From contig ADNK01002290.1 in the NCBI GenBank assembly GCA_000320545.1, positions 186,001 to 250,000 of the forward strand: a stretch of DNA of 64,000 bases, given 5' to 3'. Made by a program: the position numbers and the translations under genes. Source of the DNA: Bigelowiella natans CCMP2755 (taxonomy: Eukaryota; Protista; Cercozoa). Shown here in pieces: positions 5,397 through 49,228 of the stretch (position 1 is the stretch's first letter; each line of letters opens with the position of its first letter). The notes beneath the pieces were generated by a model. That model did not search any database, had not been told where the DNA came from, and saw only the letters and a list, made by a program, of their open reading frames with translations.

Positions 5397-6553
5397 ATTG
5401 ATTGTCTGAATTTGTCAGTTCAACTCGACCTGCATGCCAGCGTGGCAGCAGGCCAGCTTGCATTCTGGCACATCCCTGATTGTGCGATGACCAAACGATG
5501 CGAACAATGCCAGAATGCACGCTGGCACGCACCAAACGAAACGTGCAATTTGCATGTCGTTCTTCGTGAGAACGTTCAAAAACACACAAGAACAAGTGGC
5601 AATGAACGCTGACTTGCAGCAAGCACTTCCTGCAATCAGCGCGTTTGCACGTCACGCGCCAGCCTGCTGGCAGCGTGCACCACAACTGGCACAACCAAGG
5701 GCACCACAGTTCCCGCAAGCCACTCACTTGAAAACGTGACGCACAAAAGACAACGCAGGGAAAAACTGCAAGGGAAGGATGCACGGCAAACTAGCAAATG
5801 TGAGACCTTCGTTCAGGAGGTGTGGCTGCACCAGCATGCACCAGCTGGCCAGCGCAACAAGGCAAACGTGCTGACAAACAAGCAAGCAAACGTGATGAGG
5901 AATCACACTGGCACACTTCTGAAGTGTGGCAAGGCACGTTTGCAAAGTGCGAAACACAGTGCCTCGAACCAGCTTCAGTGAGGACTGAAAGGGCAAGTGA
6001 AACTCTGGAACTGAACACCGTTTTGAACGCAACGAACGTGACAAGCCAGCAAGACACTTGCAAAGCACGAAACGCAGTGAAGCGTCCACGTGGATGCGTG
6101 TGCACTCACGTGTTGACAAATGCAAAGACAACGATGAAAAGCTGCACTTCCAAAACGTTGCAAGACGTTCACAGTGCACGAAGCGCAGTGCCTTGTTCGT
6201 GTGAGCTCCATGCAGCCAGCCAGTGAGGACCAACTGAAGACCAGCAGGATTGTGAAATTGGCACACTGCTAGACTAGCCATCATGGAGAAGTGTGACCAA
6301 CAGCAATGTGGCGGACGAGGCAATGCACGTGCTTTGAGCAGGAACTCCCTGAAAGCTGCATCCAAGCGACGATCCACGGTCGGCAATTGACGGTCGGGCA
6401 ACACAAGGGAGAGCTGCACAACGATGTGTCATCACACTTTGCAACAATTTTTCGGCTCTTTGTGCAATTCTCCAACCCCACAAGCATGCCAATTCCCCGA
6501 ACTTCCACAAGCATGGCAGAGTGACAGAGCACTGAACGTTTTTGCCTCAGATT
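5397..6553. other. TpA-depleted domain 1 (probable hypermutated repeat or foreign DNA, origin unidentified)
   Basis: By-eye scan finds only 3 TA dinucleotides in ~1.15 kb, all in CTAG (5791, ~6269, ~6274). TA returns abruptly at 6554. Overlapping Tyr-free ORFs on both strands. Confidence 0.85.
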
Positions 6554-7219
6554 TAATCGGCCTGTAAGTCTTCATAACATTATGCCATTAGATTGACCAG
6601 AAATCTACAATGACGACATCTAAAAAATGTAAAAAAATCGAAGGAAGACATGGTGTAAGATGGTTGGATAAAAATTCGGTGATTTCTGTGGCTACCGTAT
6701 GCGCAGTGGCTCATCTTTCCCGCCGTATTAGAGAAAATCACCGCAGGGATGATAGATTTTTACGCTTTTCTCTTGTCGCAATTCCTCTATCAGCACGAAA
6801 TGAAGACGCAGCAAAAAAATAGCATGTATTTTCGGATCTGATGAAAAATCAAGCGCGGAGCCGATAGTCACAGTTGAAGAAAGGTGTGAGCAGGTGGTGG
6901 TGGAAGTAAATGGAGAAATTCAGTAGCCACAGTATGCGTCTCGCCCCTCGGAATTTTTGCACAATATGATTTAAGTGACCAAAGTCTCTGTTGTAGCATT
7001 TGTCGGCCACGGTCTATTCTTGCAGCACTATTCCTTGTCCAACCACCACAGTGTGCTTCAATTTGAATTAGTGCGAGATCGATGGTGAAACTGGAGAAAG
7101 GGTCCGGGGAATATGAGGGGTATTTAGGGGAAGAGAAAGACGTTTAAGAGTAGTTAGCTACGACCGGTTCATGACGTATGAAATGTTTGTCCTCTACTCT
7201 AACAGACAGCAAAAGAAAC

Positions 7220-9450
7220 ATGATGCGGTCTTTATCCCGAAGGATTCTCCTCAGACCCCAACGATCATTGCGCCACCTCTCGTCCCTCTCGAACCTTCTA
7301 TCCGGATCTATAGCTGAATTAGATCCAGAGATTACTGAGATTATTAATGGAGAGAAGAAACGCCAAACGGAAAGCTTGAACCTCATTCCTTCAGAGGTGA
7401 TAATAATGGTGATGATGATCATGATGGGTGGTGGTGGTGGTGGTGGTGGTGGTAGTTATGGTGTACTTCTTGGAACACGAATACAGGAGTCGTTATTCCT
7501 CTCTAAAATATCTTGCATCAAAACTTGTTAGAACTTCACCTCGAAAGCTGTACTTGAAGCACTCGGATCCGTGATGCAGAACAAGTACTCAGAGGGCTAC
7601 CCAGGAGCTCGGTAATAACAAACGACGAGTACTAGATTGGCTTCTTCTTCTCCTTCTTCTTTTTCTCCTTCTTTTTTTTCTGCTTCTGCTTCTTTTTGTG
7701 TTGACGGATAAATCTGGCTGCTGCTGCTTTATAAGGAGGTGGTGGTGGTGGTGGTGGTGGTTGTGATATATGACGAAACGTGTTTCTACTACTACAAGAT
7801 ACTATGGTGGAAACGAGTTCATCGACCAAGCGGAGACCCTGTGTCAAAAGAGGGCTCTAGAGGCTTACGACCTTGATCCTGAGAAGTGGGGCGTTAACGT
7901 TCAGGTAATGTAACAGTATTATTCCGCAACTGCGAGAAGATAACCACCAAAATACTTTAATATATTCATCTTATTCTCCTAACGATTATACGCTTTCATC
8001 ATGATCCATTATTAGCCAATGTCTGGATCTCCGGCAAACTTTTATGCGTACACTGCTCTCCTCAAGCCTCACGAACGTATCATGTCTCTTGACCTTCCTC
8101 ACGGAGGACACCTTTCCCATGGATACCAAACACCAACGAAGAAGATATCGGCTGTCTCTACCTACTTTGAAGTTCTCCCATATCGTCTAGATGAGGGAAC
8201 AGGTTTGATTGACTATGAAGCTCTTGCAAAGATGGCAACTCTTTACCGTCCGAAGCTTATCGTTATGGGAGCTTCCGCGTACCCACGTCATATTGACTAT
8301 GCGGCAATGAGAAAGGTAATTCAATGAAGTTTGCTTCATAAAGGAGGAAATAAGAAAGGCGTATATAACCGAAGAGATGGATACGTTTGATACCAACCTC
8401 CAAGAAAAAAATCGTTGCGCAAATGATGTTTTATCAACCAACTTGGGTCGTCGTTACATGCTCCCCAAGATCATTGGAGTTGTAATGAACATCAAGATGC
8501 AGCAGCACATAAATTGTACTCACAAATGTGACAATTTCTTGGCATTTCCTTCGTACGGTTTGACAATATGGTCGTGATTCTTTCATGATTCTTTCATCAT
8601 TCATCAGGTTGCAGATGCCACCGGGTCCTACTTGTTAATGGACATGGCTCACATCTCCGGTCTCGTAGCTGGGAAAGCTTTACCTACTCCTTTCGAGTAC
8701 GTGTCAATCAAGCTGACTATGCTGCTTTTTCTTGGAGCAACAACTGATGTGAATGATGTCATATATGCCATCTTGAAGCTTCGTAGTAGAATTTCTCTCA
8801 CCCATTATATATCCGCAATGTCGCACGCCGAGTGCCATTAATTTAGCATCAATATCGCTCGTTGCGTGTTGTGTGTGTGTGTGTGTGTGTGTTTGCATGC
8901 AAGGAAGTAGCCTTCCTCTGATCTTCTTACAGTAATCATCATCATCATCATCATCATCATCTGCTAGATACGCTGATGTGGTTACCACTACAACGCACAA
9001 GTCTCTAAGGGGGCCCCGCGGAGCTATGATCTTCTACAGGAAGGGCGTCAAAAAGGTAGAATATCAAGTGGTTTTGTCATGCAAATACGCCACATGAATG
9101 TTATATAGTCGTTAGTTGGTGGAGGTAGCATTTTGTTCGTCTCTTCCACAAGTTATAGTGTACTAGTAATAATACTGCAAGTATCTAAAAAACAAGGGCG
9201 TTGCGTCATCATTCTGTTACCGTCTCACAACGAGTATCTACCTTAAGAGTAGGAGCAAGATATCTTAGAACTTGAATGCCGACTCCACAGGTAAACAAAA
9301 AGGGAAAGGAAATAATGTGGGACCTTGAACAAAAGATCAACATGTCGGTGTTCCCTGGTCATCAAGGTAAAATATGCACTCATTTCAACCAGATAAATGC
9401 TGCTGAAAGAAGTACCAATATTTTGAGTAGAATCTGCGTACATACACATA

Positions 9451-9482
<32 letters not shown>

Positions 9483-9790
9483 CTTTTATGACTTCTAATG
9501 CATAATAACTGACGTTGGAGTCTTTTGGGCTGTTTGGTTGCTAAAGAACGGACCACATACCGTACAACACATGAAGCAACAAAAATAAAGTTAAACCACA
9601 CTCCTCATCATTTGTTGAAAACAATTAGGAGGACCGCACAACCACACCATTACTGCTCTAGCCGTGGCTCTCAAGCAGGCAAACACTGAGGAGTTTCGTG
9701 AATATCAGGCACAAGTAATAGTCCTGTTAATTTGTACAATTCCCCTCACCACCACTACTACTATACTACTACTATTACTATCCTCATCCC

Positions 9791-9826
<36 letters not shown>

Positions 9827-10562
9827 CAGGTTCTTAAGAATTCTGCTGCAATGGCAAACCGAATGCAAAAACTTGGGTACAGCCTGGTGTCCGGTGGTAC
9901 CGACAATCACCTGATGCTAGTAGACCTTCGTGAGAAAGGGGTTGATGGGGCAAAGGTCGAGAAACTACTGGACCTTGCTAACGTCACAATCAACAAGAAC
10001 ACAGTTCCTGGAGACAAGGTACTACTGGTTCACTACTACACCATTTATCTACCTATCACAATTGTAGTAGTTGAACTCAACGAACCGACCGACCGACCAA
10101 GTTATCTAAATTTCGTACCCACTCGTTTCATAACAAGCACGTTTGCACTACCTTTTTACAATACGTCATCTCAGTCCGCGATGGTGCCTGGCGGGATCAG
10201 AATGGGAGCACCTGCACTCACATCTCGAGGATTGATGGAAAAGGATTTTGAACAAGTAGCAGAACACACACAGCTCTAGTTCGTACCGATGATCATGTGG
10301 TCACCAATGGCGACTGACAAACCACATATTCAGGTTGGAGAATTCGTCCATGAAGGAATTCAGCTAGCAATTGAAATTCAAAAGGAAGCTCCTTCAAGCA
10401 AGGTGGTGTTCTATTCCTTGAAATGTGCAAAGTAATATTCTCATGGAAAATATGCTTTCCCAGCTGAAGGATTTCGTACCATTGCTCGAAAATGATGGCG
10501 TCTCCCAACTCAAGGAAGAAGTGTCGAAGTTTGCGTCTTCATTTCCATCAATTGGGCAGTGA
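7220..10562 (+). CDS. SHMT: Serine hydroxymethyltransferase, mitochondrial type, 12 exons
   Basis: Exons 7220-7396, 7532-7611, 7799-7904, 8016-8315, 8608-8696, 8968-9055, 9291-9366, 9629-9714, 9830-10018, 10175-10255, 10334-10402, 10464-10562, all GT-AG. Motifs [40 protein letters not shown] lysine in [27 protein letters not shown]. Arg/Ser/Leu-rich presequence [22 protein letters not shown]. An upstream in-frame ATG exists at 7178. Confidence 0.97.
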
Positions 10563-10999
10563 TATCCTTAATCCTGAACACTTTTTACATCCATTTGTAA
10601 ACATTCACTTGCATGAATAGAAGAAGCTGTTCTAATCAACACTGTGATGTGGCTCATGATTTTCCCCCTAAATGTGATGTCCATTCATTGGCCTTGAATT
10701 TTTTTGGTTGGTGATGTGAAATGAAGCCCATGCGATTACTTTCCTCGCTGAGGTTCGTCACACGTGCGCTACGCTCGCCTCAAGAAACCCCCCCTGCTAG
10801 CCTGCAGGCTTGTCCCGCCTAGTCGCGCACGCATTGACATGCCAGCATGCTAGCTAGGTAGCATGGCCATGCTAGCATGACAACTGAGTGATCACACACA
10901 ATGTAGCCTCTGTCAGTGTGCATGATGTAGAAATTTGGCGTGGCGTAGCTTGCGATGATGGCACGCAGTGGTGCTGGTCTCTGGGTCTACTAGTCTAGT

Positions 11000-13735
11000 T
11001 GGCACGGCAGACGTGGTGGTGCAACGCTGAAACGATCCAACGTGGGGAGCCTGGAGAATCGAACCTTGCATGATGAGAACGATGACTAGATCAATTTGCC
11101 AATGCACCGCACAAGCGCAGCACAAGTCATCCAGATCGCACGTGCGTGCACATGCAGCATGGCTCCGATCTGGTGGTGGTCCAACTAGATGAACTGAGTG
11201 GAGCGAGCGAGCACGTGCACGTTTGCACGCACTGTGGACACAACGTGACAAACGTGGTGCCACACTGGCAAAGTGCATGCATGCCAGCATGCGTGCGCGC
11301 ATCACACGCACAGCCACGTGCACAGTGCCAGCGTGCGTGCCTGTCATGCTGTTTGTTTGTGCACGCTGACTTGTGTGGTGTGCATGCAGCAATGTGTGCA
11401 GCAGTGTGCACGGTGGAACGTTTGCAGGTCTGGACTTGGGGAGCTGTCAACAGTTCCGCGACTGATGTGTCGTTCATCATCCGTCACGTGTTCATTCATG
11501 GAAGGCGATCGAGGCCGCTTTCGTCTCTTCCCAGATGCGTGTTTGCCAACGCAACCGCACCTGCAACAGGGCAACACAACACACAAAAGATGAGTGCATC
11601 ATTGATGACTTTGACTTGTGAATTGTGTTGTCGGCATCCAAACAGCTCATCAGCATGCACGTTGCTTTGAGCAAACGCCCTGCACTCCAAGCACGGGAGA
11701 GGTCGAGAATGCAGAAATCAAGAGCAGATTTCATGCTCCTTCTCTTTCACTCTTTCACTTTGATGACAGGTTTCGTGATCATCATTGCACTCATGACTCT
11801 GTGCAGGCAAGCTCCACAAAAATGCATGCAGGTGAGTGCCATGGAAACAGTTGCTGCTGTTTGCTTGCAAACACTCTTTGCTGACGTGTTTCATGCATCG
11901 AAACTCCAATTCGCCTCCGGAGACAGGGTTTCGCAAATCCACATCCTGCAGAAAAGTCAGGGTTCAGTTTTCTCAATTGTTCATGACAAATCGCGCACCT
12001 TCTCGTCCGAGTCTTTGAGTTCTGCTTGGGCAATTTTCACCCCACTTGGTGTCTCGGAACACAAGTTGCACATCCAACGTGTGATGATTGAGTGCAGCAG
12101 AGCAACTTGCACACACACCGTCCCGGCACAAACTTGACCCATCCATTGCAGACTGCAGACAACACGATGCAATGCCAACTCCCCCCCCCCTCCCTCCCCC
12201 TTTTCCAGCACGTGCAAGCTCCAGAAGCTGTTTGCCAACCGCCCTGGGGGCTGGGACGTCGATGGAACCGTTGGCCTGAGGAAAAAACACGAGGGGTCAG
12301 GCGTGATGGTCAGCAGTGCGTTGCGAAGTGAAAAAACGGGGTTTGGGTGGGATTTTCCACCCGCGAAGCTTGCACACTCAAACAGCATTCGCACCAAACT
12401 TGGAAAAAAGAAATTGAAAGCAAGTCCGTGTTTGGAGTGTCTGAAGTGCGGGAAAAGCAAAGGTGGTCATTGGAATTTCAAGGTGCAGGGAACAAACGGA
12501 GGACTTCGTGCATGCTTGGGAGGAGCACCATCCCGAGGATTGGAACACCTCATTGGAAGTGGACCGCGCGTTCATCAGGGCACTCACGTTGCGAACCTGA
12601 TGCGTTGAGGGCGGAAGCTCCGTGGATGGGACAAGTGCACCGCGGCAAGCAAAACGTTCCACGGGACTCTCTGATGTCGGCAGAATGCACAAACGAAGAT
12701 GAGGCCATGATGAAAGTTGGCCAAACGCAGTCATTTGAACTCACTGAAGGTGATGCCCCCCCACGGTGTGCACCTGGTGCCCCAAAACTCGACCAGCAAA
12801 AAAAAAGAGGAGGCGAATTGGTGTTCAAGGAAGGAAAAGATGGGAAAAAAATGCCTGTCATGGAGAAGGAGGGCTGGCTAGGAAAGGCTGAAGGGAGAAA
12901 ACAAACTTCACGGGAAAGGGGACTGTGGAAAGAAGGCACGACAGCAGACGGAAGATCATCGAAGTGGGCAGGCGAGCGTGAAGACACGAGTGCTGCAAAA
13001 ACGCTCGCAAAGTGCAGAGACTTTGCGAGTGAAGAATCAGCATTGAAAAAATTCTTTGAAGAACACGGACATGCATTGGTCATGAGTCCGAAGGGCCACT
13101 CTGAAGTGGCTGGATCAGGAACAGAACGTTCCTGGGGAAAGACCAAACGTGACCGGCGGAGGATGCCCATTGAGCAACGCACAAGTTCTCGCTTCTGCCA
13201 GGACTTGAACAAGCTGTTCCACAAGAACTCCCCACCTTTGGAGAGAACGTGGAAGTGTGCACGTGAGGCAAGAGACTGTCGCCGCACGTGTCAAAAACTG
13301 GCAGAAGAGAAACCTTTGGAAAAGAGTGAATTGCACGAAATGGAAAGGATGATGGCCGAACAAAAATGCCATCGGTCTGTCCTGAGTTCCCACGTGTCAC
13401 ACTTGCGAAATGCACAAATTGACAACGTGACGTGACGTGTGAAAACACGTGCACATGGCACAGCACTTGTGTCCTCTTGTGTCGCCAAAAATCCTCTTGA
13501 GCGTGCTTGGATGGTCGAACTCACGCCCCAAAAAAACAAATGGAATGGCCTGCCAATCGCACCCACCTGCTTCGTGGCATCCCCTCTTCAAGCTCCGCCC
13601 TGATGTGGGCTCTGCGATGGATGATGCCGCCCAACGATGCGTCACACACACACGAAAGGACGAAGTTTGAGTCCATTTTCAAAAATCCCCTGCAATCGAT
13701 GCGTTTTTTTTTTTTTTGAAGTTGGGATTTTTTTG
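11000..13735. other. TpA-depleted domain 2
   Basis: ~2.7 kb with only 3 TA found by eye (~11086, ~11185, 12878), all in CTAG. Confidence 0.9.
12200..13435 (+). mobile_element. Degenerate DDE transposase relic (IS630/Tc1-mariner-like superfamily), frameshifted and hypermutated
   Basis: Motifs in order: WDVDGTVGLRKKHEGSGVMVS, GFGW, K(C)G...GG(H)W, SSGH...DAL, GKQ..RDS, KVGQTQSF, EGWLGKAEG..Q..ERGLW, LAKCRDFASEESAL, SPKGHSEVAGSG(T)E(R)SWG (cf. PKxHxExAGxGIEYSWG around the catalytic Glu), ARD(C)RRT(C), K(C)HRS. Frameshift near 12480-12570. Termini not found. Confidence 0.8.
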
Positions 13736-40480: not shown

Positions 40481-42970
40481 CTACGTGCGGCATTCCCCAC
40501 AAGAAGCCATTCGTTTGCCTCCGATAACTGGTGCGAAGTAGTTGTATTTGGATGACGATGGGTTCTCAAAATCTAGGAAAGCATGCTTTATTGTTATGAG
40601 AAGAGATTTCAGCCTCTCCAGAACACCAACAAGATCATCCCGTGATGCCAATCCGTTGCTGCAGCAGATGGGCTGGCAAATATCGCCCGTCGTCGTCGTT
40701 GTCATCAGATTTGTCCCCGCGTTTGAGTCACTGCTACTATTATTTAATTGGGCATCATCACCATCTTTGATCCTCCCATCAAGCACCAGCACTCTATGGT
40801 AAATCGCATCCCCTAGTTTCTTCGCTGCTTTCTTTAGGGACGGCAACGTTGTGCCCCTGAATGACTTCTTGCTCTTGTAAGTGCGGATTTTGGTCATCTT
40901 CCCATCTTTGTCGCGCATGAACACGAACCGCCTCAGGCCGATGGCAGATGCCACGATGCTACATGTCTCTGCGATGATTCTGGCGTCCATAAAGCTTATT
41001 CTTATCGAAACCATAGCTATGAATTGATCAATTAGCTCCACAGCGTGTTGAGATGCCAGGTGCTCTTCCTTCGTCGAGTCCGTACGAAGCCATTTTGTCC
41101 TTAGTAAATCCTTTAGCACTCGGACCAAAGCAAATTGCAACGCTGTACTTGTAGTCGCAGCAGTGGTAGTTGTGGCAGCTGTGAGTGCATTATCTAAGGG
41201 GGCGAGAAGTAGCGCTTTGTAGAGTCTAGAAACGTGTTTTGGTGCAATTTCCGCCATAATGCCTTGGATGAGAATTACTTCCTCCCTTGCTGCTTCTGCT
41301 TCGCCTACTTCCGTTGATGTATCAAATAAAGCTTCTGAATTATAATTCAACATGAGGGCTAATGCTGCTAGAATATCATTGATTCGCGATTCATCGATGA
41401 CGACGCCAGTCCTGTTCTGCAATTGCACTGTCAACCTACGACGGAGTAGGCGGAGCTCAGGAAGGTCTTTACCAGAAAGCGTCAATGAGACGATCACCGA
41501 GGTCAGCATATGTAAAGCTCGGGGTCTCCTTTCTACCTTCTCCTCTTGTTGTTGATCTTGCTGCTGGGTTTTGGAGAAATTGGAAGTTTGGCCAATAGCT
41601 TTGTCACCCACGTAGCATACGTAGCTCGCCAGTCCCGTCACATCTAAGTTGGAAGAAGAGAAATACCCGCAGTTATCATTCTGATGATGTTGTTGCTGCC
41701 TTTTTGAGTCTTTTGATAGTAAGGCCTTATTTTCTTCTTCGCCTTCCGTTTCCGTCTGTTGATCTTGGTTGTTAAAGAATGAAAGAGGAAGACCAACGAT
41801 TTTCTTGAAAATTGATTCCCTATTCCGAACAACGTGATCGTAGCAAAACCTAAAAGGTTCGATCTTCAACGTTCCGAGCATCTTTGTTGTTAAGTCAGAG
41901 AGCCTCTTCATAATTGCATTCTGTTGTTCAGCTGGCCGAAGCAATGCACGAAATCTCATTATTATTAGGAGGAGTTTGAGAAAGGCAAGCTTCACCGTGG
42001 TCTCCGATTCCTCCATACCATCGCGTTGTAGCTTCGTAAATATTTCGGATGAAAAATTAACGCTCGCTTTCAAATAACATTTGAAGGAATTCTCGACTGA
42101 GTCTCCGAAGCTGACGATATGCCGACTGCAGCTTTCATATGCAAATGCATCACCTTGGCTTTTCTTCTTGACCAAAGAGCGTACATGGATTACTGCCTCA
42201 CGAATTCGCACCAGCTGTAGCTTGATCACTTCGGTAAATGACTGCAGGTGCATGGATCTTCTTCGTGAAGGTTTCATGATTTTGAACGCTGTCTGAAATA
42301 GTAGCAGTGAATCCTCAAACAGAACGGTGCCCCGCACAGCTTCATCTACGACCACTGAGCCCTCAACGAAAGCATCTGCATTTCGCATGGCTGATAAACC
42401 GTTCTCAAGGAGTAGCATCGTTTCACGAGGAGGACAGTTACGACAAAGCCAAAGAAGAGATGACATTGCAGCTTTGCGAATCTCCGGATGCTCGCACGGA
42501 GTGTTCATCACCTTTCCCCCTTCTTTTGACTCCGTAGGCTTCGCCCCTTTTTCTTCGTAATTTGTATTAAATTCTTCGTTATTTGTATCATCATCCTCAG
42601 AGTTCCATTCACCCTTAAGGCCACCATGTGTGTCTTCTCCCCAATCAGCTTCTTCTTCACCCACGTCCTCATCCCATCTGTCTTCGCTGCTACCTTCCTC
42701 TTTCGTGTTGCAGTCGGTTGAAGAATACACTGCACATAACAAGATTTCGATTAGTTCGAAACCTAGTTGATGAAATTCCTCCTTTAATAGGTTCTTCGTG
42801 ATCCATTGAAGCACCGATATGAAACTGGAATGGTGCTCCCTTGCGTTCCCTAGCGTTTTTTTCACAGTTTGTAATAGCTGGTGGTTGCTATCCCATGATG
42901 GTGATGATGCCACGCCATCCACATTCCTGCTTTTATATTCATGAAGACTTTCCCCCAGCGCCTTCAACAT
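40481..42970 (-). CDS. Alpha-helical protein, weakly glomulin/ALF4/Ybp1-like; long single ORF
   Basis: Uninterrupted ORF with first ATG at 42970 (~829 aa). LGFELIEILL and CRNCPPRETMLLLENGL resemble the GWDL and SPxE motifs of glomulin/ALF4/Ybp1. CDS is confident; family is tentative. Confidence 0.7.
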   Translation of the reverse strand: MLKALGESLHEYKSRNVDGVASSPSWDSNHQLLQTVKKTLGNAREHHSSFISVLQWITKNLLKEEFHQLGFELIEILLCAVYSSTDCNTKEEGSSEDRWDEDVGEEEADWGEDTHGGLKGEWNSEDDDTNNEEFNTNYEEKGAKPTESKEGGKVMNTPCEHPEIRKAAMSSLLWLCRNCPPRETMLLLENGLSAMRNADAFVEGSVVVDEAVRGTVLFEDSLLLFQTAFKIMKPSRRRSMHLQSFTEVIKLQLVRIREAVIHVRSLVKKKSQGDAFAYESCSRHIVSFGDSVENSFKCYLKASVNFSSEIFTKLQRDGMEESETTVKLAFLKLLLIIMRFRALLRPAEQQNAIMKRLSDLTTKMLGTLKIEPFRFCYDHVVRNRESIFKKIVGLPLSFFNNQDQQTETEGEEENKALLSKDSKRQQQHHQNDNCGYFSSSNLDVTGLASYVCYVGDKAIGQTSNFSKTQQQDQQQEEKVERRPRALHMLTSVIVSLTLSGKDLPELRLLRRRLTVQLQNRTGVVIDESRINDILAALALMLNYNSEALFDTSTEVGEAEAAREEVILIQGIMAEIAPKHVSRLYKALLLAPLDNALTAATTTTAATTSTALQFALVRVLKDLLRTKWLRTDSTKEEHLASQHAVELIDQFIAMVSIRISFMDARIIAETCSIVASAIGLRRFVFMRDKDGKMTKIRTYKSKKSFRGTTLPSLKKAAKKLGDAIYHRVLVLDGRIKDGDDAQLNNSSSDSNAGTNLMTTTTTGDICQPICCSNGLASRDDLVGVLERLKSLLITIKHAFLDFENPSSSKYNYFAPVIGGKRMASCGECRT

Positions 42971-43331
42971 TGGATTCCAGTGGGGGGAGAGCGACCCCGA
43001 TGCGAGTCCGAATCGACGCCGGCGAGGGGAAGGGAGGAGGAGGATAACGAAGGATATCACTGAACTGTAGGGGATCTATATAAGACGACAAGCCAGTATA
43101 TCTGAGATTGGACGAAAATCCCATGTCGTCTGCAGCAGCATTCGCATTTTTCTCTTCGAATAGAAAGAGCGTTTTGGTGGTGGGCCACGGCTTTGCTTTC
43201 ATCAGTTGGAAGGAAGGAAGGAACGAACGAAAAAGGAAGCACAAGACGTCTTTTACATCGAGACAACGAAGAGCAATTGGGGTAAAGCATCTCTACACAC
43301 AGCCACACGTACAGTCATCGCATAGGACATC
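42971..43331. promoter_or_regulatory. Probable short bidirectional promoter
   Basis: ~360 bp between divergent start codons at 42970(-) and 43332(+). No specific element identified. Confidence 0.4.
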
Positions 43332-45923
43332 ATGAAAGCAGTTGGCGCTGCTTCAAACGAAGAGGAGGCTGGCATGTTCGAGTTGATAAAGACATCGACT
43401 TCTCAGTTTCTTGCACTTCAATCTGTGTCTCGGCACGTCAAAATTAATGAGGAGGCTGTTGCAAAGTTTGCAGCTACTATCGGGCCAAAAGAACTACAAT
43501 CTGCGACACGCACACCATTCCCTCTGAAATTTAAGGTCAGTCATGCTGCGCAGTCCCAGCGTGGCATAGATGAGTCGAATTTATTTCCCAGCTAAAAATC
43601 TAACCGATTTCGTTAATAAATTGATAAATTTTGTCAGGATCGGGCATCCGAGTTGAATTTTCTCGGGCTTCTTCATGCTCTTAACTTTGGCTCCGGTTAC
43701 AGGGAGTTGCTGCACCAACACTGTAATCGCGGTGCGTACGAAACAATCGCTCACGGCTGCATCGGAGCTCACATCTCCCAGACAATCAATGCGGACTTTC
43801 TTCTGAACCTTAAGCTCGTCGATATTCCGCAGCTTTTTGGTATCCCTTTAGACATGGATGTAGAGATAAAGCCTGCAATTCATTCCACGAAACATAGTCC
43901 TGTGCGGCCCCTTGCGGCAAAGATTGTCGCTGTTTGCAATAAGATGGGTCGTACAATGCGCGCTCGACAGTGGGAAGGATTCAGCGACTTCGTCATGGAA
44001 ACACTTGAAGATATACGAGGAGTAGGCCCAGGGGGGCAATCGAAGCAGCGCAAAGGTAGCAGTCGACCCGCTGCAGACTTCGTGAAAGAGCTTGGCAAAG
44101 CTTTCCCCTCCGTTTTCAAAGATGTTTACGAGTTCAAACAGCAAAGTGGTGATAGTACCAACACCATAGAGGAAGGGAAAGAAAACAAACAAGATCCTGC
44201 CTCCACAAGTACCACGGTGGGGATGGTGCACATCTACAAAAAAGCACAGCTTCTCGTGAACGAGCTGCATAGAAGATTCAAGGACGAAGACCCCTCACTT
44301 TTTGACTTCGAGGACATCGATAACATGACTGTTTGCGCTGACAACGTGCTGCCTGCCGCTTTGCGTCACTATGGAATATTGGAGTATTCGGAGGAGCTTG
44401 GGAGGAGAGTTGACTCACGGTGCCCCCTCAAAAACAGGGAGATGGAGTGCGCAATGCGTGCCGGGAGCATTGTTGCTTGCGAGATGATTCTGAAAGAGCT
44501 GAAGGCACGATCTAGTGATTGGAATACGAAGGTAGCAGTGTTTCAGAATTAGTGATTTGATGGTAGATGAATGAATGGTCTAATGCATGCAATGTCATCC
44601 ACCATTCGAGTCTATTTTGCAAGAAATTAAATTCAATCTAACAATGCCTTTTGTTTTTTTTCGATTTCATCATCGGGGAACAAGAAGCGGAGAAAGAATG
44701 TCGGTGAAAACCCAGGCGGCAAGAAACTTGAGGCCACCTATTCACATCCAAAATGTCGACCCCTCTCAGATTCAGATCTCAAGAAAGCAAGTCAAGCATT
44801 CTTCATATTCTTTTCTTATTAAATTTTGGTGTTCATCATCATCATTATTAGCATCATGAATATCAGTAACAATACTGAGCCAATATTATTCCGTAGGGGA
44901 ACAACAACTAGAAGAATTGGAAGATCATAGCTACGGCTGCATCGTGCTATCTTCTTCCGCCTCTCGTTCTTCTAGCGAGAACGAATCTGAACAACAACTG
45001 CCGCAGCATACATGCGTGCTGCTAATCAAGCCCAAAAAGACAAGCAAGGGCTATGTTTTTCCAAAAGGCCATCCTGATCCTGGTGAAAAGATGGAGGATT
45101 GCGCATGCCGAGAGACAAGGGAGGAAACTGGGGTGACACCGTCAGGGCATCTTCAAAGTGCTTATGCTGAAAGGGGCTACAGCTTCATCGGAAAGCTTCA
45201 TAGCGACAAATGGAAGAAACATGCAGCATACCCTGACGAAGCAAAGCGGCCCATCCTTGTCGTGCATAAAATCGTTCGTCTATACTTCGCCTGGTGCTCT
45301 ACATTGGTAAGAAACTGGAATAGATGAGAATCTGTGAGGGGGTAAGGTTGAGATGGAGGTCTGTGACATTCTGTTGGTCTTATGTTGTTACCGTTGCTCC
45401 TTCTGCGCTAATATTTATGAGCCTTTAGTCCATTACTGCTAGAGAATAAAAAGAAGAAGATGAAGAACAGTCTGGAGGAGAAACAAAGATTTTTTCCTAT
45501 TTTTATATTTGTGTCATTTTTACTTTGCTACTTTTAAGTGCCGCCTCCTCCCCCCCCCCTCAGAACACATCTCAACTGCGACCCAATTCAGAGGCTCATG
45601 AGGTGGTCTGGGTACCATTACAGGAGGCAGAACAAAAGTTAACATTCCAAGAGGATAAGGACATGTTACGAGAAGTGCTTCGTACTAATCAAGTTATGAC
45701 AAAGTTGAGTGCCCTCAAGTGGGAAATTCCCAAAAAATATCAAAAGGGAAGTGCAGGTGATAGCAAGCAGGGTGTGGATAACCGTAGAGACGATTTTGAG
45801 GATGATCCGAGCAAGCTAGCTACTAGCGATGCCTTGGACTTCTACTTGTGGAGGGAAGTAGGCAAATTGCCTCAAGTGCGAAAGGAACCAAGACATCTCA
45901 TGCAAGATACCGTGTTCTATTGA
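43332..45923 (+). CDS. Queuosine salvage protein (QNG1/DUF2419 family) with an inserted Nudix hydrolase domain
   Basis: Exons 43332-43535, 43638-44531, 44685-44790, 44897-45306, 45564-45923 splice in frame. Q-salvage motifs HVKINEE, ALNFGSG, FPSVFKD, YKKAQL, TVCADNVLPAALRHYGILEYS, ECAMRAGSIVACE and terminal LDFYLW...RHLMQDTVFY. Nudix box FPKGHPDPGEKMEDCACRETREETGV. Confidence 0.85.
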
Positions 45924-46648
45924 AGCAAGCTGGCATATCTAGTATATGTGTGTGCATATCCACATATGTGAGCATTGTAGTAACTTAGCTAATTCGAAAT
46001 GTTCTTCACGTAATAGCGTACAGGCGTGTTACTCGAGTTGGCCATGCTAGCATGATAGAAGTGCATATGCTCAGTGCATATACTAGACATATGATGCTAA
46101 TAGTGTACGGTATAGTGTTGCTATCCGTAGATGTCGCAGCTATACAGTATAGCTAGCAGTAGTTTCCTAGAATCACAATGCGCGACTATTGCTGACACAT
46201 AGCAAGATGTAGACCACAGTAGAGTGCGCACGTACATCTAGACATGCGCATGACACCTACTCCAAACGAGTGCTGTGTATAGAAATGCACAACACGCGTG
46301 CATATTGATCATTGTCTATAGCTTGATAGCCGTACGGACAAAATTGTTATTAGCATTGCTAGATTGAAGTATGTTTACATGTGTATGTGTGTAAATGTTC
46401 TTTTTTTAATTAATAATGCTTCTCGTACGACGTCTAGACGTACACGGGGAAGCCCTAAAGTAATGTGGGATCTATGTGCTGCCCCCCCGTGTTAACTCTT
46501 AGGAGTGTTCAGGGTGACGAGAAGGTGTCTAATGGCTATAATATTGATGACTGATACAATGAGTATCCAGATACCAGTGTGTAAAACACATATGCCGGCG
46601 GTGTTTTGCATGATACGATCTCATTTGATGTTAAACTGCATTTCAGCA

Positions 46649-46800
46649 TCATCTAGTGGCTAAAGCGTCCGTTGCCAGCTTCAGTGGCACGGAAGACCTT
46701 CGTCTGGGTTTTACAGGCGTGTTCAATTTGAGTAACTCGCTCTCTAATGTGACCTCCTCAGCCAATTTGTTCCTCACTGCATAGTTAACAGAGCACATAC

Positions 46801-46835
<35 letters not shown>

Positions 46836-49228
46836 GCACACAATGAAGGCAGATGCTTTCAAATAGGTTCCCTAATTGTGATAGCATTAATCATTACCTA
46901 ATTTCTGCAAGTTGCTTCGCTCTCCTCGAAGCCGCTGGAGTTCATTTTCCAACTCGCACACACGTTGGTGCTCTTGCTTCAGCAGCTAAGAGGAAGCAAC
47001 AGAGTGACCAAGATCATTATGGCGTTGGAGGACATATTTGTGCTTTATATCTCTTTACTCATCATTTTGAACACCACTTCTATAAAATTAAAACAGTAGT
47101 AATCATGCAACCTGACATCCCTTAGTCTTGAGCTGGTCTAGTTGTGCTTGGACCCGCTCAGATGCCTATGGTTGTGTTCCATCGGGTATAATAATGTCAA
47201 CAAAGTCAAAAGACCACAGGTGGCCCAACCACCAGCAGGTGCTTTCTACGAAGAAACTCGAAGAAGCGTATTGATACAAAAATTACCCCCGAAAAAACAT
47301 TCCCACACCCACACCCCCACACCAACACCACTAAATCCACAGTGGAATATACCCCTATCAATTGTCGTAGTAATCGCTGGTAGTAGTTAGTAGTAGTAGT
47401 AGTAGTAGTAGTAGTAGCACAAACACATGGTAGAAGTAAAACACCTCCTCGCTGCTAGCCTCTTTGATCTGCTGAACGGCATCAACGTGTATGAGAATGT
47501 TACTTTTCGTTCTATCGGGCTCTACCCAAGACGTCTTGTTCAGAGCAGGGTTGAAGTAGTACATACACTCAGTTTTCTCATCCAAGTACCTATTAATAAT
47601 GATGTGGTGATGAAACAGATGACGTTAGTAGGTAGGGTGTTGGATATCGTGTGATATTTCTAAAACATTGACAAATTAAAACTCACGCTCCCCCACCCCC
47701 CCCCCCACCGCCCCCCTCTCTTCTCTTGTTCAACCCTATCCATATATCCGGTAGTTTGTCCTGACAGGAAAAAGCACATAAATAGTTTGAGGCATATCAG
47801 TTGTAAGCAACTTGCAGGATCACACAACTTCAAACGCTATCTTTCGCAAACTTATTGGTGTGGTTATGTAGTCTTTGGAACTGTAAGGAAAAGAAACAAC
47901 TCCCGCTCTCTCGCTCTCGCGCGCTCTCTCTCTCTCTCTCTCACCGTAACAAGAAGAGGCAACAGCACAATCTAGTGCTTCAACATTGCTTTTGCTGCAC
48001 TATTGCTGCTACTATTGGCAGTCTACTTTTGCTATTATAATTATTATCATCATGCTAATAATCGGATCATTCTCCTCATCTTACCGGGAGACCAAGATCC
48101 TCGCTGTCAAAGGAGGCGAGGGAGAACGTAGAGGACATGCGTTTGTGCCCGACTCCATCAGCCCCTCGAGATGTACTCGACCGCCTCGCGATGGCAGTAG
48201 CCGACGAAGACAGCTCTGATCCATCCGAAAGCTGAAAATCAAACAGATAAGTTGCTTATATCCTTGAAGTCATCATAAGCCAAGCTAAAAATCACTCTTG
48301 GGAGTGCTACAGATTTAGTTGTAACATTCTGAATAGATGCTCTACTCATACCACTGAGGGGGGTGCAGACTGCGTCGAGACCTGCGACTTTATGGAGGAC
48401 GTCAAATCTTGAATGTCTGGAAGACAACATGTCAGCGTCGCTATCACTTCATCTCCTATTAATTGAGCTACCTAGATCGCACTCATCACTATTTCTTAAA
48501 TCGTTTTTACGTTCCGCATTGCTCGGCTCTTGATTGCCATCATTATGTCCTGATTCTGGAAGGCAGGCTCATGTCAAACGATGCAAGTGCGTAGAACATA
48601 ATCATACTGCCTGTAGGTAATACCTTTGTTACTCTTCTTCTCTTTGTTTGCCACAACAGGCTTAGCTGGGCGGCGATCTCCTTCAGGAGGAGTGCTATTT
48701 CCTAGGGCCTCCTGATAAGCCTTAGAGGTTTCTTCTATTTTGTACCGAAGACGCTCAATCTAAATAGGACCATAATATCATCACGACAACAGAATGCCCC
48801 TCGCCCCCCCCCCACACTCTCTTTCTCATTCACAACCTCTCGCTCGAGTCTGGCCTCGTTACGTTTTTCTTCACCCAGCATAATTTTGTATTTCTCGACG
48901 ATAGCATGTAGCCTTTCATTCTGTAATTGCATAGCCACGTTGGTCATCGTCATGCTTATAAACAGGCGTCTTGAAAAATGATTGCGATCTACAGCTACAC
49001 AACCTCTTTTGCTTCGTCAAGATTATTGTTGGCAGCATCTCCTCTCTTGGTTGACCAGGCTTCTTCTACAAGATGGCCCATCATCAGAAATAAATTACTG
49101 TGCTTATTATCAGGAGCAGATGCAGAATTACTTCTATAAGATTTGTAGACAACATATGCCATGGTAGCCATGCCTCCGACAGCAGCGGCTGATACTACCA
49201 GAGCTCTGGAGGAGGACCCTATCATCAT
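46649..49228 (-). CDS. Membrane-anchored coiled-coil protein with WW domain, multi-exon
   Basis: N-terminal anchor ALVVSAAAVGGMATMAYVVYKSYR; coiled coils at ~48810-48950 and ~46900-46985; WW DEKTECMYYFNPALNKTSWVEP at 47510-47590. Exon joins not fully resolved. Confidence 0.6.

Follow-up and report, generated by a model that had tools for sequence, protein, structure and literature searches.

A Nudix hydrolase domain nested within a QNG1-family queuosine-salvage glycosylase in Bigelowiella natans

Nudix enzymes convert nucleoside-diphosphate-X compounds (NDP-X) to nucleoside 5'-monophosphates, and the function of QNG1, the queuosine-5'-monophosphate N-glycosylase that frees the micronutrient queuine in queuosine salvage, was assigned only in 2023. 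QNG1 prefers queuosine-5'-monophosphate (Q-5'-MP) and has ribose-5-phosphate as its other product; the candidate sources of Q-5'-MP are a kinase still to be identified and tRNA decay (PMC9881137). In the solved enzyme D298 and W302 hold the 7-deazaguanine; the same C-terminal helix and tail also bear H316 and, as an invariant final residue, Y323. The free carboxylate of Y323 is part of the active site, and a C-terminal tag inactivates the protein (PMC9881137). Here we describe a nuclear gene of the chlorarachniophyte alga Bigelowiella natans CCMP2755, on the plus strand of a 64,000-nucleotide stretch of contig ADNK01002290.1 (the whole stretch is referred to as the window), whose five exons encode one 657-residue product in which a Nudix hydrolase domain interrupts QNG1 just ahead of this C-terminal helix.

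The window was searched exon by exon, and the full-length protein used for folding is a database record, P0216. Pfam Q_salvage (PF10343) matches exon 2 with an E-value of 6e-22; its score of 79 bits, for this exon as for P0216, exceeds the gathering threshold of 25, while exon 1 and the tail are invisible to Pfam alone, so that a custom QNG1 profile was needed. Searching the five exon peptides separately with this profile, built from 37 QNG1 proteins of ordinary length (350 positions), gives collinear coverage: exon 1 corresponds to positions 6-58, exon 2 to 61-313 (2.6e-82) and the 36 residues that end exon 5 to 316-350 (E 1e-8 at Z = 1000). The family is thus matched in full and in sequence, and whatever lies between profile positions 313 and 316 is an addition to it. 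The LDFYLW...TVFY stretch, which the original prediction had taken for the C-terminus of the family, indeed reaches the last of the 350 positions, and its final Tyr directly precedes TGA. The QNG1 host is made of P0216 residues 1-366 and 622-657, and equivalents of K199, D231, E267, D298, W302, H316 and the terminal Y323 are all conserved, as judged by alignment to 7U07/7UK3 and by residue tallies. In P0216 numbering, Lys269 stands in the motif IYKKAQL (44232-44252), the nucleophile Asp303 in CADNVLP (44334-44354), Glu339 follows, LDFYLW spans residues 629-634, and Tyr657 is the last residue.

A single assembled transcript joins these parts. Transcript contig L011 (2257 nt; JGI 3300017095, Ga0186110_102538), whose product is also present as MMETSP Transcript_47241, 'type:complete', aligns with the window by blastn in five blocks of 99.9-100% identity (43168-43536, 43636-44531, 44682-44791, 44897-45306 and 45563-46034) and reproduces the predicted splice junctions 43535/43638, 44531/44685, 44790/44897 and 45306/45564. 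Its product is P0216, which equals the exon-by-exon translation of the window except for one Gly/Asp difference, carries both PF10343 and PF00293 by Pfam, and was retrieved by a word search with the Nudix region of a B. natans paralogue described below. At least one assembled transcript thus holds all exons on one mRNA, with the Nudix exons neither skipped nor placed on a second message, and the motifs singled out beforehand are all found where they had been placed. The proposal that this is one spliced gene, with the Nudix domain an insertion rather than an adjacent gene, is borne out by the collinear QNG1 profile coverage, the single transcript and the model fold presented below. All four introns are GT-AG, with lengths of 102, 153, 106 and 257 nt; intron 3, which follows the phase-1 end of exon 3, divides an Arg codon.

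The public gene model, JGI 55419 (P0001, 346 aa), is the best match of exon 2 and is identical to the window sequence wherever the model is coding. It contains a false intron within exon 2 and stops at a TAG inside intron 2 (window 43332-44552), and L011 shows it to be wrong at both places. A protein of this kind, stopping after exon 2, would be dead, because the tail residues equivalent to D298, W302, H316 and Y323 are needed. That the QNG1-Nudix gene has this architecture and is expressed is, in our assessment, practically certain.

Pfam NUDIX (PF00293) matches exon 4 at 3.5e-12, and on P0216 it clears its cut-off of 21 bits with a score of 59. A profile of 13 stand-alone Nudix proteins of one protist family (197 positions) covers exon 3 residues 17-35 with positions 4-22, exon 4 with positions 25-142 (E 2e-49) and exon 5 residues 8-47 with positions 151-190; judged by this coverage, the insert is essentially an entire stand-alone protist Nudix protein (positions 4-190 of 197), at approximately P0216 residues 383-585. 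In exon 3, the second half (44733-44789) codes for the Nudix module's N-terminal extension (..CRPLSDSDL..), and the first half for a remnant (KRRKNVGEN..) of a small beta-rich domain that is retained in the paralogue. The Nudix box, at 45067-45135 (P0216 residues 459-481), fits GX5EX7REUXEEXGU at all of its fixed positions, the first U being Thr, in agreement with the earlier call of an intact box; the same consensus is satisfied in the paralogue and in the two related sequences L001 and P0077, introduced below, and the catalytic Glu residues are invariant in the protist Nudix family.

Hydrolases of diadenosine tetraphosphate (Ap4A) of the NUDT2-like subgroup have a conserved Tyr approximately 17 residues after the Nudix box. 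In the protist family an invariant Tyr stands 15 residues after the box, aligned with the NUDT2 Tyr; after it comes an insert of 29 residues peculiar to the family (45175-45270, in exon 4), in which D, W, H, R and P are invariant. The best matches of the family profile are human NUDT2 (1e-16) and the Ap4A hydrolases of Aquifex (1.7e-16) and C. elegans (1.9e-15), with CT771 and Ndx1, and Dcp2 comes later; Ap4A hydrolases rank above Dcp2, DIPP and MutT by profile, and ordering by the Z-score of the fold comparison leaves this unchanged. The Ap4A-hydrolase-like character first proposed for the module is therefore where both approaches point, these enzymes being closest by profile (1e-16 to 3e-13) and by fold (Z 16-17). 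NCBIfam gave generic Nudix matches only, all sub-threshold, and a protein atlas yielded nothing beyond 'Nudix hydrolase' and a putative Ap4A hydrolase of archaeal origin. A match to mouse ZPR1 (2QKD; phmmer E 5e-5) at window 45621-45881, exon 5 residues 20-106, falls on the end of the Nudix module and a non-conserved linker and was judged to be due to chance.

An AlphaFold2 (AF2) model of P0216 has a predicted local distance difference test score (pLDDT) of 89.8 and a predicted template modelling score (pTM) of 0.72; the corresponding values for the L001 open reading frame (ORF) are 87 and 0.70. Low confidence in P0216 is confined to residues 371-382 and 601-611 (pLDDT below 50 at 601-611), which in the model are the two flexible tethers of the Nudix module. 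VIA-align superposes model residues 12-657 on residues 5-323 of wild-type StQng1 (7UK3) with a Z of 32.8 and a root-mean-square deviation (rmsd) of 2.4 Å over 311 of 319 residues, and model residues 5-657 on human QNG1 (7UGK) with a Z of 31.5; since the superposition runs through residue 657, the QNG1 tail is predicted to go back to its usual place beyond the insert. Residues 408-586, with the alpha/beta/alpha fold of Nudix enzymes, superpose on the Aquifex Ap4A hydrolase (3I7U) with a Z of 17.2 and an rmsd of 1.7 Å over 133 of 133 residues. Z is 16.5-17.2 against Ap4A/Ap6A hydrolases and about 16 against mycobacterial MutT1/Rv2985, and the best fold matches of the Nudix module have rmsd values of 1.6-2.5 Å over the whole target. 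In the predicted structure, both folds are complete and both catalytic motifs intact on one polypeptide, and we think it likely that both active sites are functional.

A second QNG1-Nudix gene of B. natans, on contig C255 (~9250-12300, minus strand; L007 4258-7294), has the layout of the window gene and ends ...TVFY-stop. The extra one of its six exons encodes the small beta-rich domain (..VGHKVKLQDLKK..GRHGVELL..) that has been lost from the window copy. Its public model (JGI 91892; P0069, 643 aa) connects QNG1 with Nudix but continues into the last intron and misses the catalytic tail. Between the two copies the synonymous divergence (dS) is ~1.1 and the ratio of nonsynonymous to synonymous divergence (dN/dS) is 0.13 overall, with 0.18, 0.09, 0.34, 0.14 and 0.11 for exons 1 to 5; the duplication is old, and purifying selection acts on both copies, also in the Nudix and tail exons. 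A third Pfam match to Q_salvage, at C915:19575-19652 (25 bits, 26 residues), is unsupported by the B. natans exons and was not counted as a copy; two still weaker pieces neighbour this site (L008 ~6300-8300), which may be a relic or chance.

The same nested architecture is present in two chlorarachniophyte-like sequences. L001, a transcript-like contig from another JGI sample, holds an uninterrupted 674-aa ORF composed of QNG1, the small domain, Nudix and the tail, and matches the window exon for exon; P0077 is a fragment that runs from Nudix into the QNG1 tail. In Amorphochlora amoebiformis an orthologue (L002 6001-12332) has introns of 1-2.5 kb, and its matches end at L001 residue 289, near the contig end. 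An exhaustive search of 1.84 billion representatives with the L001 ORF found the two domains together nowhere outside this small group among the best 150 of 1863 matches, and returned many proteins of ~180-240 residues that are 35-52% identical to the inserted part. The sources of the stand-alone relatives of the Nudix module are marine protists, Polykrikos and Picozoa among them, and the nested Nudix domains can be grouped in a single clade, with weak support. The B. natans genome contains TGT genes but neither an ordinary QNG1 nor a free-standing member of this Nudix family. A metagenome scan with exon 4 gave no B. natans record, its two matches being an HPP-fused Nudix (L009) and a weak one (L010), and a word search with P0023 residues 175-506 gave only P0023 itself and bacterial GrpB-Nudix proteins, a blank that is uninformative because the search missed P0069 and P0216. 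The protist Nudix family has the signature LHxDxWxxHxxYPDExKRP, and its fusion set comprises P0144, P0205, P0206, P0085, P0095 and L009 33-1184. A literature search for QNG1 or DUF2419 together with Nudix found nothing relevant; the architecture is already in public protein sets (P0069, P0216), unremarked.

The Nudix module sits in the last surface loop of QNG1, a few residues away from the base-pocket helix. Nesting was probably forced, because QNG1 needs a free C-terminal residue: the enzyme would tolerate nothing beyond its last residue, and an extra domain would have to be N-terminal or internal. Other long QNG1 proteins have QNG1 at their extreme C-terminus, with no informative enzyme partner among them, and six other QNG1 proteins carry low-complexity inserts of 59-97 residues in the same loop. 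The QNG1 protein P0002 (GCA_977009605.1) is interrupted at the same point, by a small beta-rich domain homologous to that of L001 and the B. natans paralogue, and its tail is closely similar; it is without Nudix. This distribution suggests either a stepwise history, with the small domain first and Nudix after, or loss of Nudix. The small beta-rich domain (L003 4699-6090, P0002 ~350-410; L001 ORF ~380-420) is without a Pfam match, resembles Cadherin-like domains weakly (E 0.02-0.3) and has low AF2 confidence.

A different base specificity had been suggested from the sequence ADNVLP, where the solved enzyme has Tyr after the catalytic Asp, and this suggestion is not supported. Among ~170 retrieved QNG1 relatives, a sample biased to protists and nearly all without Nudix, the catalytic Asp is followed by Asn in 140 and Val in 136, and by Tyr-Lys in only two; since D-N-V is common in relatives, it is a trait of the branch and not specific to the fusion. 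The replaced residues, Y232 and K233, which are N and V in the B. natans protein, contact the ribose and 5'-phosphate in the solved enzyme, not the base (PMC9881137). If D-N-V matters at all, it would thus affect phosphate and ribose binding rather than base choice. A branch-conserved Lys four residues past the Trp, where by spacing the solved enzyme has Gln306, may compensate for the lost phosphate-pocket residues.

The most economical idea of how the two sites might be coupled is a hand-over of Q-5'-MP from Nudix to QNG1. The Nudix site would cleave a diphosphate-linked queuosine compound (a Q-5'-di- or triphosphate, or a dinucleoside polyphosphate or NDP-X that bears Q) to Q-5'-MP, and the QNG1 site would then split Q-5'-MP into queuine and ribose-5-phosphate. 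A bifunctional nested protein with a Q-5'-MP-supplying Nudix domain is the best explanation as a whole, held at somewhat less than even confidence, and the hand-over itself we put forward tentatively. On balance we doubt the more specific claim that Nudix makes Q-5'-MP from a diphosphate-linked queuosine compound, which implies that Q di- or triphosphates or Q dinucleoside polyphosphates are real in cells. If it were true, eukaryotic queuine salvage would have an upstream pyrophosphatase step, hard-wired beside the glycosylase site in chlorarachniophytes.

Several observations weigh against such coupling. Q di- and triphosphates and Q-containing dinucleotides are hypothetical cell metabolites. 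The replacement of Y232/K233 by N/V extends to most protist homologues, and with it even the 5'-monophosphate preference is unproven for this branch. The host loop accepts unrelated inserts, as the small beta-rich domain in P0002 and the six low-complexity cases show. Finally, members of the Nudix family are also fused to SIR2 (two clusters, P0144/P0206 and P0205), rhodanese (P0085), an HPP membrane domain and DUF4743+Nudix; judging by these partners, the family is a promiscuous module, which weakens the argument for coupling from the fusion itself.

The last two of these points also favour a second explanation, namely that Nudix is a housekeeping enzyme in its own right, an Ap(n)A/NDP-X hydrolase that came to lie in a permissive QNG1 loop and was kept as the cell's only copy, its substrate unrelated to queuosine and the fusion a matter of co-expression only. 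We regard this as the main rival, nearly as probable as the coupled reading: the nearest solved relatives are general Ap4A/Ap6A hydrolases, and since the genome has no stand-alone copy of the family, selection on Nudix alone would explain the dN/dS of 0.14, whereas nesting has been retained without fission in two paralogues (dS above 1) and at least two further lineages, and the insertion lies only a few residues from the base-pocket helix.

Sirtuins release O-acetyl-ADP-ribose, and some Nudix enzymes hydrolyse this compound. The two separate SIR2-fusion clusters, together with ribose-5-phosphate as the co-product of QNG1 (PMC9881137), are what favours a Nudix domain that acts on the ribose-phosphate side, on ADP-ribose-type compounds, or that serves as a nucleotide-binding regulator. 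We regard this as improbable: by profile and fold the module is nearest to Ap4A hydrolases and not to ADP-ribose pyrophosphatases, NUDT9 and NrtR-type proteins ranking lower, and the invariant catalytic Glu residues speak against a purely regulatory role. It is hardly credible that the locus is an artefact, either a truncated QNG1 and a Nudix as adjacent genes or a decaying duplicate, as the end of JGI model P0001 at the TAG in intron 2 and the absence of the small beta-rich exon kept by the paralogue might suggest, because the single transcript contig covering five exons with an open frame of 657 codons refutes it at the mRNA level, exon 3 offers no in-frame ATG upstream of the Nudix fold, a product stopping after exon 2 would be without the equivalents of D298, W302, H316 and the terminal Tyr needed for activity, and dN/dS is 0.09-0.34 across every exon.

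The conserved, expressed fusion brings a predicted pyrophosphohydrolase to within a few residues of the base pocket of QNG1 and so offers a concrete hypothesis for how the glycosylase may be fed. It would also be a clean natural case in which a catalytic C-terminus has forced one domain to nest inside another, and two public B. natans gene models are corrected, both of which had cut activity-essential residues. We give these points moderate weight, since they concern one small algal group and a predicted function.

The coordinates of the gene are collected in Table 1. On the minus strand, head-to-head with the QNG1-Nudix gene and ~270 nt from its ATG, lies an intronless open frame of 859 codons (window 40481-43060) that is partly low-complexity, and a (CA/TG)n microsatellite is found at window ~46790-46840, ~750 nt past the last transcript-matched base.

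Table 1. Features of the QNG1-Nudix gene in window coordinates.
Feature	Position	Strand	Content and basis
5' untranslated region	43168..43331	+	Reach of transcript contig L011 (blastn); in-frame TAG two codons 5' of the ATG
Exon 1, 68 aa	43332..43535	+	N-terminal QNG1, family profile positions 6-58
Exon 2, 298 aa	43638..44531	+	QNG1 core, profile positions 61-313; Pfam, custom profile, alignment to the St enzyme
Exon 3, 35 codons + 1 nt	44685..44790	+	Half small-domain remnant, half Nudix N-terminal extension
Exon 4, 136 codons after the split Arg codon	44897..45306	+	Nudix fold; Pfam and stand-alone Nudix profile
Exon 5, first part	45564..45704	+	Last Nudix strand and C-terminal helices; family profile 151-190, NCBIfam MutT1-like stretch
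Exon 5, middle	45705..45812	+	Poorly conserved linker returning to QNG1
Exon 5, end	45813..45923	+	QNG1 C-terminal helix and tail, profile 316-350; Asp630, Trp634, His649, Tyr657, then TGA
3' untranslated region	45924..46034	+	Reach of transcript contig L011

Among described systems, the B. natans protein is most like QNG1 itself (DUF2419, PF10343; S. thermophilus 7UK3/7U07/7U91, human 7UGK/8DL3), in its full-length profile match and in a model fold like that of helix-hairpin-helix glycosylases. It shares with QNG1 the catalytic Lys, the nucleophile Asp, the Glu, the base-pocket Asp and Trp, the His and the obligatory terminal Tyr, and differs by an insert of ~255 residues that contains a whole Nudix enzyme and separates the last core helix from the base-pocket helix. 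At the nucleophile, D-N-V replaces the D-Y-K/R of the solved enzyme, and a Lys comes after the Trp; both traits are found in most protist homologues.

For the inserted module, the best combined profile and fold matches are the asymmetrical Ap4A hydrolases (human NUDT2, 3U53; C. elegans, 1KTG; Aquifex, 3I7U), the T. thermophilus Ap6A hydrolase Ndx1 (1VC8) and mycobacterial MutT1/Rv2985. The intact Nudix box is shared with the Ap4A hydrolases, and the invariant Tyr after it aligns with that of NUDT2. The B. natans module differs in being nested in another enzyme and in its membership of a distinct protist family that has the 29-residue insert and, at the N-terminus, the extension ..RPLs..Dl.rA... 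Members of that protist family (P0082, P0100, P0111 and P0123; P0095 of Polykrikos; P0144, P0205, P0085 and L009) are 38-52% identical to it over ~185 residues and share both the extension and the insert; these others are free or fused end to end, and only the chlorarachniophyte-like ones lie inside QNG1.

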